Assembly (NCBI GenBank): GCA_001643675.2
Contig: LSRY02000009.1
Coordinates: 62,001-126,000, forward strand
Length of the DNA stretch: 64,000 nt
DNA from: Monocercomonoides exilis PA203
Lineage: Eukaryota; Protista; Preaxostyla
Reading direction: 5' to 3'
Position 1 is the first letter of the stretch. Every line of letters starts with the position of its first letter. Under the pieces are notes generated by a model. That model did not search any database. It saw nothing but the letters and a program-made list of their open reading frames with translations, and was not told the origin of the DNA. The translations under genes were made by a program, and so were the position numbers. Below are positions 55,519 to 61,885 of the stretch, piece by piece.

Positions 55519-57949
55519 AAAAGGATCAGCCACATGTATTACAGTCTGGCCCAAAAAAATGTTGATCTGTCCGTTTTTAATGTCGATCATACCATGCTTT
55601 TTAAATAAATAATGAACCATATTTTACATAAATTGAATGGATAGCAAATAAGAAAGTATGACTATACGTGGAAAATGGAGTTATTGCTATTTTTTTTTCC
55701 AATATATAATCAATAATGTTTGATGTTTATTACACAATAGTTCATTAACAAATTTAGCTATTAATTGGTTAAATATTCTTTCATTATCATTCTCACTCGA
55801 ATAAGGTTTTATAAGAGAATATTCTAGTTAAAATCTTTGTGTATCAATTTTCTTATTAATTATTACTTATTGAATCATATTTATAAAATGTGTTGTCCAT
55901 TTAAAACAAATTGAATAAGTATCTCTTATTCATATGTTTATTTTATGCACTGAATGGTTATTAAACTGTTTTATTCATGCTTTTCACTTCAAAATCTCAA
56001 AATAAAATTGAATATCGATTAATGACGGTTGTTCTTATTTCTTTATTCTTTATTTTCATTAAATTTTTATGGAGAAAATGAGCAAATATCGCATTGATCA
56101 TGCTTTGGAATCAAGAAAATATGAATTTTCATTTCTCGTTAATCGAAAGTATCAACACATATGTTTATAACTTTTTTATTCAGTCTCTAGACACATTAAA
56201 ATTTACAAAAAATTAAAAAACTTTCATTGTGATGTAAAATCAAAGTTTTGAAAGCAAAATTATAAGTACATAATCTTTCTTTAAACATATAAATCATCTC
56301 TTTCAATAATAAATGCAATAATTAAGGAAAATCAAAAGTTGTAGTTATAATGATGTTTTCAACACATGGAAAGCATGCGAAGGATATATACTACAATCAA
56401 ATGAAAGAACAAATTAGCTTATTTGAAGAATGCACTAAATTGAAGTTTTTTTAAAAACATGAACCATGCTAAAACATGGAAAATTTGAGAACAACAAACC
56501 GACTGTTTCTGTTGAATTAACTTTCCGTTTCGCATGCGATAGTTTTTTGACTTAGAACCAATCATGAGGTGATCTTCAATATGTTTCATAATTTAATCTT
56601 CACGAAATATGAAAGATGCAAAACCAAAAAGAAAATGCATTAAAATGGTAAATTGAAATTGAATGATTATTACGTGGATACCATTTCTATTTTGTTTATT
56701 TTCGAGTCATTTACTCAAAGAGCTCTTAAACAAAATATGACATTAACAAAACATATCAATCATACTCATATCATTCAATTTTGGGAGTCCTTTTTGGATA
56801 TTGTTGATGGTATGATCGACATTAAAAACGGACAGATCAACATTTTTTTGGGACAGACTGTAAAAAAAATAAACCCATTTTTATTATTGTCATGTGGAAA
56901 ACCCGCACATTTGCATTTACTCGCACACTTGGGTTAAGATGATAGTTTGTGCAGTTTTCATTTGAAAATTGAATTTCATTCTTAATTTCAAATCATTTCT
57001 TGATAAAAAAATTGTTTTTGAAAAACATTTCACGTTGGGTCAGCTTTGATCTTTTTGATTATGCTTCCCTCCTTCCACTACTCTCATTTGTTTTTATTTT
57101 GTATTTTCAAACAGCTGAAATAAAGAAAACAAAAAAGGGAATGAAAATATCTATTTTTATGTTGTTCAATATGAAATTTTCGTGAAATGGATAATAGATA
57201 GATAGATATCAAAAAGTGAGGACCGAGTGAAAAAGAATATCAAAAAAATAATATTATTACGTTCAGCGCATTTTTTCCCCAAAAGCGCAATGTGAAATCT
57301 GCGGAATAAAAAAGATAACTGACATAAAAAAAAATTGTTCAATTAACAAGGAGTATTGAATATTCAAATAAAATGAAACTAATAAGAAGAAATAAAGAAA
57401 AAATACATACAAAATGATTGTTTTGAATTGAATTTCTTCTAAATAGGAAGAATGAATTGTTTTCGTTAAAATGGAATATTTCATAACGGATTATGGTTTC
57501 AATCCCAGAAAATTTATATTTTAAATCTAATTTGATCATTCTTTTCGGCATAAGTGTAACAAAAAACCTTCTCCAATTTCATGATTTTATTCATGATAAT
57601 AAGTGGGAATGAATAACATAAAAAAACAACACTTTTGGGTGGAGCAGTTTATTGTGATATCAACAAAAATTTCATAAATAAATTTTTTGTGATCTGTCCC
57701 ATAATTAAAGTTTTATTTCAATCTTATTTGCTTAATACTTTGATGCCTGTGAATTGAAAGTTTATCTTTCGATATGATAACACAATACTAAAATACTTCA
57801 CAAATAAGGTGTGAAATTTGAAAATTATCGTTGTTTAAGAACGTTATTTTTTTGTTTTAAAAATGTAATTTTGGAGGAGTTTTCTTGTTCATTCAACAAA
57901 TGTTCGGTATAAGATCATTCCGGAGCGTTATATTGCAAAAGTTTGTTAA

Positions 57950-58745
57950 AAATTGTAATCACAAAATCCAATTTCACAAGCTGTTCAGCTGCTCATGGAG
58001 GAGCAGTTCACGCAAGGAATCCACAATCAAATTCTGTTTGGGTATTATAAGAAAACAGAGTGGAAAATTGCTAAATAACAAGTTGGTATGGAACTTGTTG
58101 GGAAATAGTGCTTGACGAAATGCCATCAGATGCAAAATTCTTATTCAATAATTGCTCCTGCATTGCAAATACTGGTGGCGATGCTGCTAGCTCTCTTACA
58201 TTTTATTATTCTCCAAGCAATAAACCAATTCAATTTTCAATCAATGATTACCAGTTCATTAATAACAATCTGATTGCCTCTGTAAAATATGGAGGTGCAG
58301 CGATGTGTTTTTATCCTCCATATCCTTGGATGAGCGGAAATAAATTCATCACATTCTGCTTTTTCGATGGCAACACTGCCAAAAACGGCAGAGGAAACGA
58401 TGTGTTCTTCAGTAGCAGCAGCATCACCCAATCTCCATTCCAGCAATGCGGTTCAACAACGCCAGCAAAAAGAGTCTGGAATAATGGACAAGCTGATAAT
58501 ACCGTGTACAACAGTTGGCTTCCAATCATCAACCAGAACAAAATTGTCTCAAATGGTGGAAGTGATGTCGGTGCCTGTGGCAAAACACAGCAAAGCCCAT
58601 GTGCCACTGTTGAGTATGCTCTCGGATGCATTGCTCCCTTCAGCGATGCCTCCCTCTCTCTTCTCGTCTCCACTTTCACTCCCACAAAGACTCTCACATT
58701 TCGTGCTCCAAATACAAAAATCACTGGAAATGGAACAATTGCTCC
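57950..58745 (+). pseudogene. Captured internal fragment of a GGA-motif surface-protein gene (paralog of 5180-5980)
   Basis: Collinear with the 4336-6460 pseudogene from KSNFTSC to ITGNGT. In-frame TAAs at 58048-58050 and 58072-58074. Both ends truncated. Confidence 0.85.
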
Positions 58746-58749
58746 ATCG

Positions 58750-59520
58750 TTTGAATCTTCATACGATGTTCATAAACATAATTTATGCACATCATCATTT
58801 CTTATTCTCAAACTTTGACTCTTCCAACTCTTCCACATCCTTCCTCTTCTCCATCTTTTTCTTCTTCTCCTTCTCCTTCTCCTCCTTCTCCTTCTCATTC
58901 TTCTTCTTCTTCTACTTTTTCTTCTTCTTCTTCTTCTTCTTCAATATAGACGGCAGCGGAGGCAGCATCTGCGCAGTTTCAGCAGCGTATTCTGCATCTT
59001 CTTCTTCTTCTTCCTCTTCTTCCTCTCCTCCGCTCTCATTCAGATCTTTAATACTCCTTCTTTGACTTCTTCGTGATTTTCTGTTTCCTCCTATAATTTC
59101 TCTCCTCTCCTCCAATACTCACTCCTCTGAGTACTGAATCTGTCATCTCCATCGAAGACCATTCCTTCAGAGCGAAATTCGTCCTTCGCGCAGGTTCTGC
59201 CTGCTTGACGAAGCCATGTGCCTGTGAGTCATTGACTTCAACATAAGAAAGAAATCCCTCCCACCCAATCAACTCTTCAAGCGCGCTTCAGAAGCTCCTT
59301 GTGAAGCTCCGACTTTGCAAGGTAAGTCAACGAAAGGAGTGTCCTTTACAGAATCTCAAACTTTCACGACTCTTCAAGACTTGTCCGCGCTTGCCTCGTC
59401 ACTTCCTAACTTCTTCGCAACAATGAAATCGACAGAGCATTCTTAATGCCTCGTTAACGACTTGATGCTCCTTCCTAACTCGCACTTTCAGCATTGTCTC
59501 TTCTGAACAGCTATTTCATT
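58750..59520 (-). pseudogene. Second captured fragment (Glu/Lys-rich, unidentified), opposite orientation
   Basis: Coding-like GAA/AAG-rich composition with broken frames. Abuts the surface-gene fragment. Confidence 0.4.
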
Positions 59521-61885
59521 CAGACAAACATATTCAAGTTCGCTTCATGTTTATGTTCACCACATTTCATTAAACAAAAATAGTTTTATTTTATAGTATC
59601 ATCTGTTCTTTCAGAAAAAGAGATTAATAAGGAGACAAAAAAGTTGAAGCAAAAGAAAGGAAATAATAAGTATTCTGTTAGAAAAAATTAAAAAATGAAA
59701 AAGATGGACGAAATGAAATAATTAATGATGTGGCCAGTTTTTATATTATCATTTATGGAAATGTGTCAATAGGTGTTTGAAACTTCTAATTTTTTGTCAT
59801 TTTCTTGAGGTAAAAAAAGGAAAATGTTTTTTCATCGCAATAAAAAAATAAAAATTGAATCAATTTTTTCTGTTGGGATATATTTCATATTCACAAATTT
59901 TCAAAAGTTTTTCATTTTAAACATTTAACTTTATGCAACATGAAAAAGAATCATCTTGACCTAACTTTCTTATGAAAATTCCTTAATTATTTATCACTTA
60001 ATGTAACGATCATATAAGAAAAAAATGAGCTGATAATCGTATTTACAATGTTGATATATAAATGTTTAATCAAATGGAACAAAAATAATTGATTTTATTT
60101 CTTAAATAATCTTTCTTACTAAAAAAAATCGACTCCAAATAAACATGGTTTTTCACTTTTGAAAAATCGAAAGACAACTTTAATATGTAATACAACAACT
60201 TCCAAAGCATTCAAAAAATCAAATTTTACAAATATTATTTTAATGAATAAAAGGAAGTTACCATTTAGGTGAATTGAAAAAAAAAATCGAATAATACTAA
60301 ATAACAGAGAAAAAGTGCAATTTTCAAACCTCATTTGTGAAGTATTTTAGTATTGTGTTATCATATCGAAAGATAAACTTTCAATTCACAGGCATGAAAG
60401 TTTTAAGCAAAAAAGATAAAAATTAAAATTTAATTATGGGTCAGATCACGAAAAATTATTTTCGATTTTTAATGTTGAAATCTCAAAAACTGCTCCACCA
60501 AAAACTGTTGTTTTTTTATGTTATTCACTCCCACTTATTATCATGAATAAAATCATGAAATTGGAGGAGGTATTTTGTTACACTTATGCCTTCTTTTCAT
60601 ATTCGAAAGGTTTTATTGGGGGCTCTTCTCTCCACGATGATTGTTCGACCGCACAAATATTTTCCATTGTTGTTAAACATTTCCAAAAGAGTGAAATGTG
60701 TGACATTATTCTTTGAGAAAAATAGTTTTTCATTTGAATTTTCAGAACACAAACAGTTAATTGGATAAAGCGAGAAATCCAACAATCAGGAGATCGAATA
60801 TGCAATACACAAAATTGAAAATAAGATCTGAGAACGAAGCAATGATTGTTCAGAATTGGTTTAGCATTAACAGAAAAAAAAACTTGCACAAATTAGTGGT
60901 TTGTTATCTTTACCAGTTGTTATCACAAAATAATATCGGTTGACACTCAATTGAGAATCGAAAGTGTGATTAATGATTCATCATTTCTCAAAAAATAAAA
61001 ACACAAAATTTTTCGAATTTTTCTTTCTAAATAAAGTGTGTGTTATTTTGTGTTATCTAATGAATACACTTGTGCAAACTGTATTTGATTCAAATTCGAA
61101 TAATTCGCTCATGAAAACGATAAACTTCTGTCAAATCACTGTTGTTTGTTATCCTATTTTCTTTTTATTGGAAGTGAATCATTTGTATTCAAGAAATACA
61201 GTGCTTATTTTGTTTCATTTTCATTGTTCATCTTCTTCATTTATCTGTTTCAGAGTCTCATTTTCATTATGTTGGTGAAGATAATAATTTGGAGAAGCTT
61301 ATGACAGATTCAAAAATTGAACTGAAATAATTCCTATGAGCCAACTCAGACAACTAAATTGATTTGCATTTACTGAATTGTCTGGAAATGAATAAAGAAA
61401 GTTTCGGAAACCAAATAACATCATTATGCTATATCTTGTCATTCAGAAGTTTAATAAATATAACTCACAGGGTTTCATGATATCAGGCTATTATCTGTTT
61501 GATAACCAACGAATTCAATCGTTTTATGAATTTCCACATCAAGATCATTGTTCGACGTATTTGGTAATAATTTTATTGCCTCAAATAAAAAGATCATTCT
61601 TTTTGTAGCCGATGTTAATAAACAGTTGTGTGCGATAATCTCCAATAATTTTTTTTAGATTATCATTCATCTACGAATTATATTTTTAATATAGTGTTTA
61701 ATTCTTTTTTTCTTCTTCTTCCGACAAATTTCTTGGTCTAATATTTTTTCTTGCTAATTCTTTTTTTGATTTCGACCATTGTGCCCAATGAATACAACAA
61801 TAACTGTATCGCTGTTTATCTATTTATGTTAATCTTTTCTTTTATCATTTCTACCATCTGTAAAAAATCAAAAATCAAAAATCAA

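Follow-up and report, generated by a model that had tools for sequence, protein, structure and literature searches.

A host receptor fragment in a non-autonomous Merlin transposon of Monocercomonoides exilis, probably captured once and later overwritten from host paralogues

The carriage of host gene pieces is well known for Mutator, CACTA, hAT and PIF elements as well as for Helitrons. For the Merlin superfamily of DNA transposons, which is related to IS1595 and IS1016, we found no description of cargo-carrying members in the searched literature. Merlin itself has been published for Monocercomonoides sp. PA203, with more than 100 copies from at least seven families and target-site duplications (TSDs) of 8 bp (Lopes et al., PLoS One 2021, PMC8101967). 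These elements contain internal tandem repeats, and their terminal inverted repeats (TIRs) measure mostly 23-29 bp; neither non-autonomous derivatives nor host-gene cargo are mentioned (PMC8101967). Here, we study a stretch of 64,000 nt from Monocercomonoides exilis PA203 (contig LSRY02000009.1, positions 62,001 to 126,000, of GenBank assembly GCA_001643675.2; G000:C91:62001-126000 in our naming), referred to as the window, which contains a 3,044-bp element with long TIRs and a truncated piece of a host receptor gene. The assembly searched comprises 82.3 Mb in 101 contigs. An earlier note, made from the letters of the window only, had presented the element as a gene-capturing transposon resembling plant Pack-MULEs, i.e., Mutator-like elements (MULEs) with host cargo, and as without precedent in metamonads. 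The latter holds as far as cargo-carrying Merlins are concerned, which the published account does not mention, but not for Merlin as such.

We consider it probable that the element is a non-autonomous Merlin whose cargo was captured once and was later overwritten from host paralogues. It spans window positions 57547-60590, starts with GG, ends with CC (see Table 1 for the ends and all parts) and is enclosed by a perfect 8/8 TSD, ttcttttc. BLAST measures its inverted repeat at 274 nt with 90% identity. A transposase was found neither in the element nor in the whole window, and tblastn of the family transposase described below against the element gave a best E-value of 3.4. In all these respects, i.e., length, long TIRs, GG...CC ends, TSD and lack of a transposase, the first description was confirmed.

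The genome-wide search with the TIR, which had been proposed along with that description, gives at least 41 matches. We retrieved 20 family loci, namely about 15 short copies (2.5-3.6 kb) and five long ones (6.5-10.6 kb). Besides the window copy, nine copies have perfect 8-bp TSDs, including the autonomous copy of 6.9 kb, and one further copy shows a TSD with 8/9 matches. The sequences of the perfect TSDs are unrelated to each other and mostly AT-rich. Given this number of TIR matches and at least nine other paired copies with their own perfect 8-bp TSDs, the element is not a chance pairing.

The long copies contain an open reading frame (ORF) of 636 aa that matches the Pfam profile PF12762 (DDE_Tnp_IS1595) over positions 5-153 of 153 (E = 3.5e-18, 66.5 bits at a cutoff of 27). 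Between the five long copies, the respective transposases are 96-100% identical on the amino acid level, and four of the five are without stops. The family transposase is 98% identical to a database protein named ISXO2-like transposase of Monocercomonoides exilis, and hundreds of more distant Merlin transposase matches are spread over the rest of the genome. Short and long copies agree at their ends: the outermost 13 nt do not differ at all, and over the terminal 163-184 nt, the short copies show 80-86% identity with the ends of those copies that encode the transposase. A Pfam scan of the cargo ORFs and of the ORFs of the long elements returned the transposase only. We found no MULE (MURA-type) transposase; in elements that have such ends, the IS1595-type DDE transposase is the only one encoded. 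Since its ends are common to long copies that encode DDE_Tnp_IS1595, the element classifies, judged by sequence, as a non-autonomous Merlin and not as a MULE. That is, the Merlin alternative, which the earlier note had mentioned because TSDs of 8-9 bp and GG termini are typical of Merlin, turned out to be correct, and autonomous partners exist in five copies, while the Mutator assignment has to be given up.

This also bears on transduplication in the manner of Pack-MULEs, where a Mutator-type element captures and combines several host fragments such that the cargo differs among copies. Long TIRs, an 8-bp TSD, the lack of a transposase and two coding-like pieces are what one would look for in such an element. 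However, the partners that share the ends of the window copy encode another type of transposase. Moreover, its interior is common in full to about 12 other short copies, with which it aligns at 72-91%, and its receptor fragment has equal boundaries in every copy and is also found in the autonomous elements. We thus give this explanation next to no credence.

The receptor fragment, i.e., the first cargo piece, covers 287 codons in a single frame without indels. It is identical in 216/287 amino acids (75%) to residues ~431-717 of an intact ORF of 3,057 aa (C25:1000475-1009648) and is cut off on both sides relative to this host gene, which agrees with the doubly truncated surface-protein gene fragment noted before. 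When compared with 20 host genes, it shows nucleotide identities of 71-81%, and the similarity breaks off sharply at element positions 336 and ~1196-1202. Searching the genome with the cargo protein yields over 1,500 candidate places, many of them within open frames of 2,500-3,100 aa, such that intact parent genes, another point to be checked, are available. The respective host family of receptor/kinase-like proteins comprises more than 500 paralogues with proteins of ~3,000 aa and is the largest gene family of the host. It is the 'protein tyrosine kinase' expansion, which shows overlap with the 'unclassified repeats' that account for 35% of the published assembly (PMC8767320).

All family members carry the same part of the host gene. 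Based on tblastn with the host protein, every copy, short or long, is matched over the same residues (from ~442-457 to ~703-705), and the same host segment is also present in divergent sub-lineages on contigs C91 and C25. On the DNA level, the homology sets in at element position 336-416 and stops at 1184-1202 for each of the 20 host genes. Because the boundaries are common to autonomous and non-autonomous members, this indicates a single acquisition, i.e., a receptor piece of ~0.86 kb would have entered the family once, in the common ancestor of both. The window copy would then have inherited its fragment and not captured it, because all ~20 members, autonomous ones included, hold the same segment at the same place. 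The acquisition of the fragment by the non-autonomous element itself is contradicted by its presence in the five transposase-encoding copies. Capture by this very element and a cargo that differs between copies, both part of the initial proposal, were thus not borne out.

While the location of the fragment is constant, its sequence is not tied to that of its carrier. In a maximum-likelihood (ML) tree of 18 fragments borne by transposable elements (TEs) and 20 host fragments, the two groups are interspersed. Here, the fragments of the window copy and of the copy on C33 cluster with two host genes (support 98/96), and those of three long copies with two other host genes (100/98). A single TE clade is rejected by the approximately unbiased (AU) test (log-likelihood difference 161, p = 1.5e-5).

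The discordance is also visible when copies are compared in pairs. For the copies on C27 and C43, the backbone identity is 97% and the fragment identity 81%; the respective values are 96% and 78% for C2/C48 and 90% and 73% for the window copy and C38. The discordance is limited to sharp tracts with ends inside the host-homologous segment. These tracts cover element positions 563-1043 (C27/C43), 498 onward (C2/C48) and 399-1169 (window/C38). Directly upstream of its tract, i.e., at element positions 336-398, the window copy is 93-98% identical to its sisters vs. 73-78% to host genes. Between the window and C38 fragments, we count 221 differing sites. The respective bases occur in the 20 host genes at 205 and 197 of these sites, while ~120 are expected by random change. 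Private bases make up 2.7% of the window fragment, 0.2-3.6% of the host genes and 5-8.5% of decayed copies.

In the C2 copy, the host-derived sequence is longer. It covers host residues 449-857, i.e., it continues for ~450 bp past the family boundary, after which the final ~100 bp of the old fragment appear a second time. Such a structure is expected as the footprint of a template switch, where repair synthesis runs on along the host template and then re-anneals. In addition, the element backbones are mosaics of one another; the copies on C5 and C26, for instance, are 89% identical in the fragment and 79% in the backbone. Taken together, the mixing in the tree, the discordance of backbone and fragment, the discrete tracts, the host alleles, the run-on of the C2 copy and the mosaic backbones are best read as recurrent homology-directed copying, by gene conversion or template switching, from host paralogues and other elements into the element.

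A simpler explanation would be a plain non-autonomous Merlin with one ancient fragment that has decayed, such that the mixing reflects saturation and poor tree resolution. It is in line with the star-like host family (identities among the 20 sampled paralogues of 68-84%, median 77%), with 20 of 35 tree nodes being open, with a best donor match of at most 83% and with the differences between C5 and C26, which resemble ordinary decay. But decay can neither yield tracts of 480-770 bp at ~72% identity that are flanked on both sides by 97% in one element pair, nor explain why about 90% of the differing bases are the same as host alleles, nor add 450 bp of further host sequence to the C2 copy. Given that a single clade is rejected as well, we consider this explanation improbable.

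Alternatively, different copies might have freshly captured the same host segment independently, without any conversion of a resident fragment. This would account for TE-borne fragments of several origins in the tree and for the longer host piece of the C2 copy. The outer fragment boundaries are, however, the same in all sublineages, and the replaced tracts start and stop inside the resident segment with sister-like sequence kept outside, as for the stretch in front of the tract of the window copy. Independent captures are therefore quite improbable in our view.

Furthermore, host alleles might have been written into the TE-borne fragments by the assembly procedure. For the published PA203 Oxford Nanopore assembly, polishing involved Nanopolish as well as ten Pilon rounds (PMC8767320), and short reads of paralogues that are mis-mapped during polishing would produce host alleles without any single donor. 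We checked this for the window copy using read-built unitigs of three DNA runs (2016 and 2022, same sample). The unitigs bridge both junctions between element and flanks and match the copy-specific variable part of the cargo (58097-58320) exactly, at a depth of about 100, which equals that of unique element parts and corresponds to a single copy. Because both junctions are bridged and the copy-specific cargo is reproduced at single-copy depth, the locus is not an assembly artefact, which had been named as a way to refute the element. For the tract of the window copy, a polishing artefact is unlikely given this exact match, and as an account of the host alleles in TE-borne fragments as a whole we consider it very improbable.

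Several observations weigh against overwriting from host paralogues or narrow its basis. Foremost, when the assembly was searched with the replaced tracts of four copies (window, C38, C27 and C43) and with the more variable half of the window fragment, no match exceeded 80-83%, with 40 of 400-600 candidates scored in each donor search. This gap is at odds with sister backbones that are only 3-10% apart. Possible reasons are that donors were lost or are missing from the assembly, that each tract was pieced together from several donors, or that the host family turns over fast. The tree includes 20 of the more than 500 paralogues, which were picked by similarity to the window copy, and the whole analysis covers one strain and one assembly. 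Finally, we infer the direction of transfer, from host to TE, from numbers and decay, and the mobilisation of short copies by long ones from their common ends only.

Recurrent overwriting of a fragment captured once still explains the data best, and would have proceeded as follows. The short element would be moved in trans by the 636-aa transposase of its five sisters of 6.5-10.6 kb. The receptor ectodomain piece probably entered the family before the split into long and short copies, since all copies hold the same host segment at the same position. From then on, the resident piece would act as one more paralogue of the host family. Discrete tracts within the homologous segment would have been overwritten several times by other family sequences, and at least one tract seems to have passed the old boundary. 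As the mechanism, we consider homology-directed repair with template switching most likely, either in the form of synthesis-dependent strand annealing (SDSA) that follows excision or a break, or as ectopic gene conversion. The mosaic backbones fit the same process. The claim that the element copies and shuffles surface-gene modules is thus supported in part: sequence appears to flow from the host family into the element, while nothing shows a flow back or any product.

One may go further and regard the TE-borne modules as full participants in a genome-wide network of segmental gene conversion that keeps the receptor family of more than 500 genes in mosaic flux. We are rather doubtful about this idea. 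If true, the element backbones, which lack paralogues outside of the family, would provide a built-in neutral clock for module replacement. Modules would then be replaced many times faster than point mutations build up, given that the backbones diverge by 3% and the tracts by 19-28% and that no donor has survived. Variants of the module could also be brought to new loci by mobile copies, and the receptor family would make up much of the 35% 'unclassified repeat' fraction.

Next to its truncation, the fragment of the window copy has three in-frame stops, at 57910, 58048 and 58072, and neither a start nor a signal peptide. The copy is therefore a decayed passenger, and no function is indicated. 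Its flanks have a GC content of 26%, and an in silico removal of the element reveals no ORF of at least 110 aa across the junction. That is, the copy sits in AT-rich non-coding DNA. Table 1 lists its parts together with the long copies of the family.

Table 1. Parts of the element in the window (window positions) and long family copies (contig positions)
Feature	Position	Strand	Evidence or remark
Left copy of the 8-bp TSD (ttcttttc)	57539-57546		identical to 60591-60598
Left TIR, begins GGCATAAGTGTAAC	57547-57858	+	outer 104 nt 95% complementary, then 210 nt at 80%; at least 41 genome matches
Host-derived fragment, residues ~431-717 of a ~3,000-aa receptor/kinase-like membrane protein	57883-58743	+	amino acid and nucleotide match, host-gene architecture, beta-helix model
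Putative replaced tract within the fragment	57945-58715	+	identity to C38, C5 and C26 drops from ~93% to ~70%; 93% of differing bases are host-family alleles
Low-complexity (TTC/TCC)n, length varies among copies	58814-59037	+	repeat families, copy alignment
Second coding-like piece, GC 44%, short copies only	59052-59541	+	64% nucleotide identity to C6:1674851-1675343
AT-rich spacer (22.5% GC), family-specific, short copies only	59542-60279		copy comparison, base composition
Right TIR, finishes GTTACACTTATGCC	60280-60590	-	inverted-repeat and copy comparison
Right copy of the 8-bp TSD (ttcttttc)	60591-60598		identical to 57539-57546
Long copy, 6.5 kb	C48:349895-356396		
Long copy, 6.9 kb	C25:233898-240826		
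Long copy, 7.4 kb	C38:42931-50302		
Long copy, 9.7 kb	C27:188301-198049		
Long copy, about 10.6 kb	C63		

We also studied what the receptor fragment might encode. The host parent on C25 begins with a hydrophobic leader at its N-terminus, which is followed by a long ectodomain, a single transmembrane helix and, at the C-terminus, a kinase-like lobe. The Pfam search of this host gene matched only the C-terminal kinase lobe; for the ectodomain there is no match at E <= 0.1, Chlam_PMP (PF02415) included. Neighbours of the module in a protein language model carry PF02415, PF13229 and PF07602, which we take as a lead only. The structure model of the module has predicted local distance difference test (pLDDT) values of about 85-90 across residues 1-190. 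A Foldseek search of the PDB with this model gave no significant match, but in an exhaustive structural search each of the 50 best PDB representatives is a right-handed beta-helix protein (Z 10-13.4, alignments of 165-200 residues). Based on the model, the cargo is a predicted ectodomain module that forms a right-handed parallel beta-helix. It is expected to lie outside the cell because of the leader, the single transmembrane helix and the C-terminal kinase-like domain of the host gene. Calling the cargo a surface-protein fragment was thus fair. Concerning the GGA-motif surface proteins to which it had been assigned, the beta-helix and the surface-exposed region are in agreement, but given the missing Chlam_PMP match, the data do not establish that it belongs to the Pmp family. 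The window also contains a paralogue from the host receptor family (4525-6348, minus strand). It covers residues 333-940 with 72% amino acid identity to the reference gene on C25, and its module is 81% identical on the nucleotide level to the cargo of the C2 copy.

The second coding-like piece stands out by its GC content, compared to 22-26% in the neighbouring element DNA and the flanks. It consists of low-complexity DNA with open frames on both strands that shift between copies. Its sole relative outside the family, found in a protein-level search, is a weak match on C6 (E = 1.8e-14; see Table 1), which comprises the last ~90 codons of a 608-aa low-complexity ORF rich in serine and glutamate/lysine as well as downstream DNA. 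This ORF (L072:2572-4398, minus strand, with L072 being G000:C6:1672500-1678500) has an actin gene fragment at a distance of ~1 kb (L072:5469-5951, minus strand). The piece may be an old second acquisition. A second coding-like fragment, as reported in the earlier note, is present, while its supposed opposite orientation is unsupported: when aligned, the C6 ORF runs in the same direction as the first cargo fragment. The orientation is not disproved either, because both strands are open in low-complexity DNA. A 355-nt contig from an RNA library (2024 metatranscriptomic library, 'synthetic metagenome') matches window positions 59034-59354 exactly at a depth of 3.6, which is no proof of transcription. 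Shorter pieces from RNA libraries over the receptor fragment could derive from host paralogues.

On the DNA level, the right 1.3 kb of the window copy (59040-60280), including the second piece, is found solely in short copies. Long copies have only the ends, the receptor fragment and low-complexity DNA in common with the short ones. Because this 1.3 kb of the short interior is absent from long copies, the short elements are not simple deletion derivatives of them. In the autonomous elements, one end resembles the other at only about 78% across ~200 bp, and both ends of the short elements are nearer to the cargo-proximal end of the long copies (85-86%) than to the transposase-proximal one (76-80%). 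This resemblance of both short ends to one long-copy end suggests, on alignment grounds, that the long and similar TIRs of the short family arose by duplication of one end.

Within the long copies, the C-terminal region of the transposase contains a 21-bp tandem repeat, which encodes MEKEEKE (L045:2327-3037 and L046:7178-8023, where L045 is G000:C48:349895-356396 and L046 the 9.7-kb autonomous copy of G000:C27). Its copy number varies between genes that are otherwise 97-100% identical. The 9.7-kb copy has an additional open frame of 428 aa (L046:5262-6548, plus strand), which is absent from the long copies of 6.5-7.4 kb retrieved in full. This frame is a distant relative (about 25% amino acid identity) of the same beta-helix module and may represent a second cargo from another receptor subfamily.

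Four family members are without TSD, namely C48:314733-317999, C91:1062826-1065338, its duplicate C91:1519982-1522493 and C25:2470850-2473854. Their 300-bp flanks are perfect inverted complements (252-300 of 300 matched without gaps), i.e., the element is placed on the axis of a palindrome. For the C25 copy, equal-scoring receptor-gene matches in opposite orientation are found 8.45 kb off on each side, with the extent of the palindromes judged from symmetric matches only. C25 has many other inverted receptor-gene pairs with equal scores, and some of such inverted duplicates may be identical. The palindromes are consistent with fold-back duplication seeded by the long inverted repeats of the element.

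The finding extends host-gene carriage to the Merlin superfamily and to a metamonad. The arrangement is unusual, since the cargo is also found in the autonomous elements and appears to be repeatedly rewritten from the biggest gene family of the host. It links two poorly understood features of M. exilis, i.e., the huge receptor or 'tyrosine kinase' expansion and the abundance of DNA transposons. With a neutral backbone beside a cargo that is exposed to paralogues, the family offers a natural experiment to measure ectopic conversion in an organism without genetic tools.

With the published Merlin elements (PMC8101967), the family has in common that its autonomous partners encode a DDE_Tnp_IS1595 transposase, that its 8-bp TSDs follow no clear consensus, that its termini are GG, that the transposase gene contains internal tandem repeats and that several copies are potentially active. 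It differs by TIRs of about 300 bp, by the host receptor fragment in all members and by short copies that are not simple deletion derivatives. With ectopic conversion and SDSA, as known from gap repair of P-elements and Ac/Ds and from mosaic surface-antigen families, it shares that discrete tracts are confined by homology, that the donor alleles stem from a pool of many genes and that copying occasionally runs on past the homology, where re-annealing leaves a duplication. Unlike in these systems, the recipient is a mobile element, the pool is the largest gene family of its host and no donors are identified. Plant Pack-TYPE elements (Pack-MULE, Pack-CACTA; PMC6379663, PMC8903248) are similar in that a transposase-less element with TIRs and TSD spreads truncated host coding sequence, probably acquired via repair synthesis with template switching. 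In a broad sense, the window copy is of this type, since it has TIRs and a TSD but no transposase and part of its interior stems from a host gene with intact relatives. In contrast to the plant elements, no evidence of chimeric transcripts was found here, and the family belongs to the Merlin superfamily, holds one family-wide host segment in place of diverse cargo and carries it in autonomous elements as well, such that variation would arise from overwriting the resident fragment by paralogues and not from the capture of new genes.

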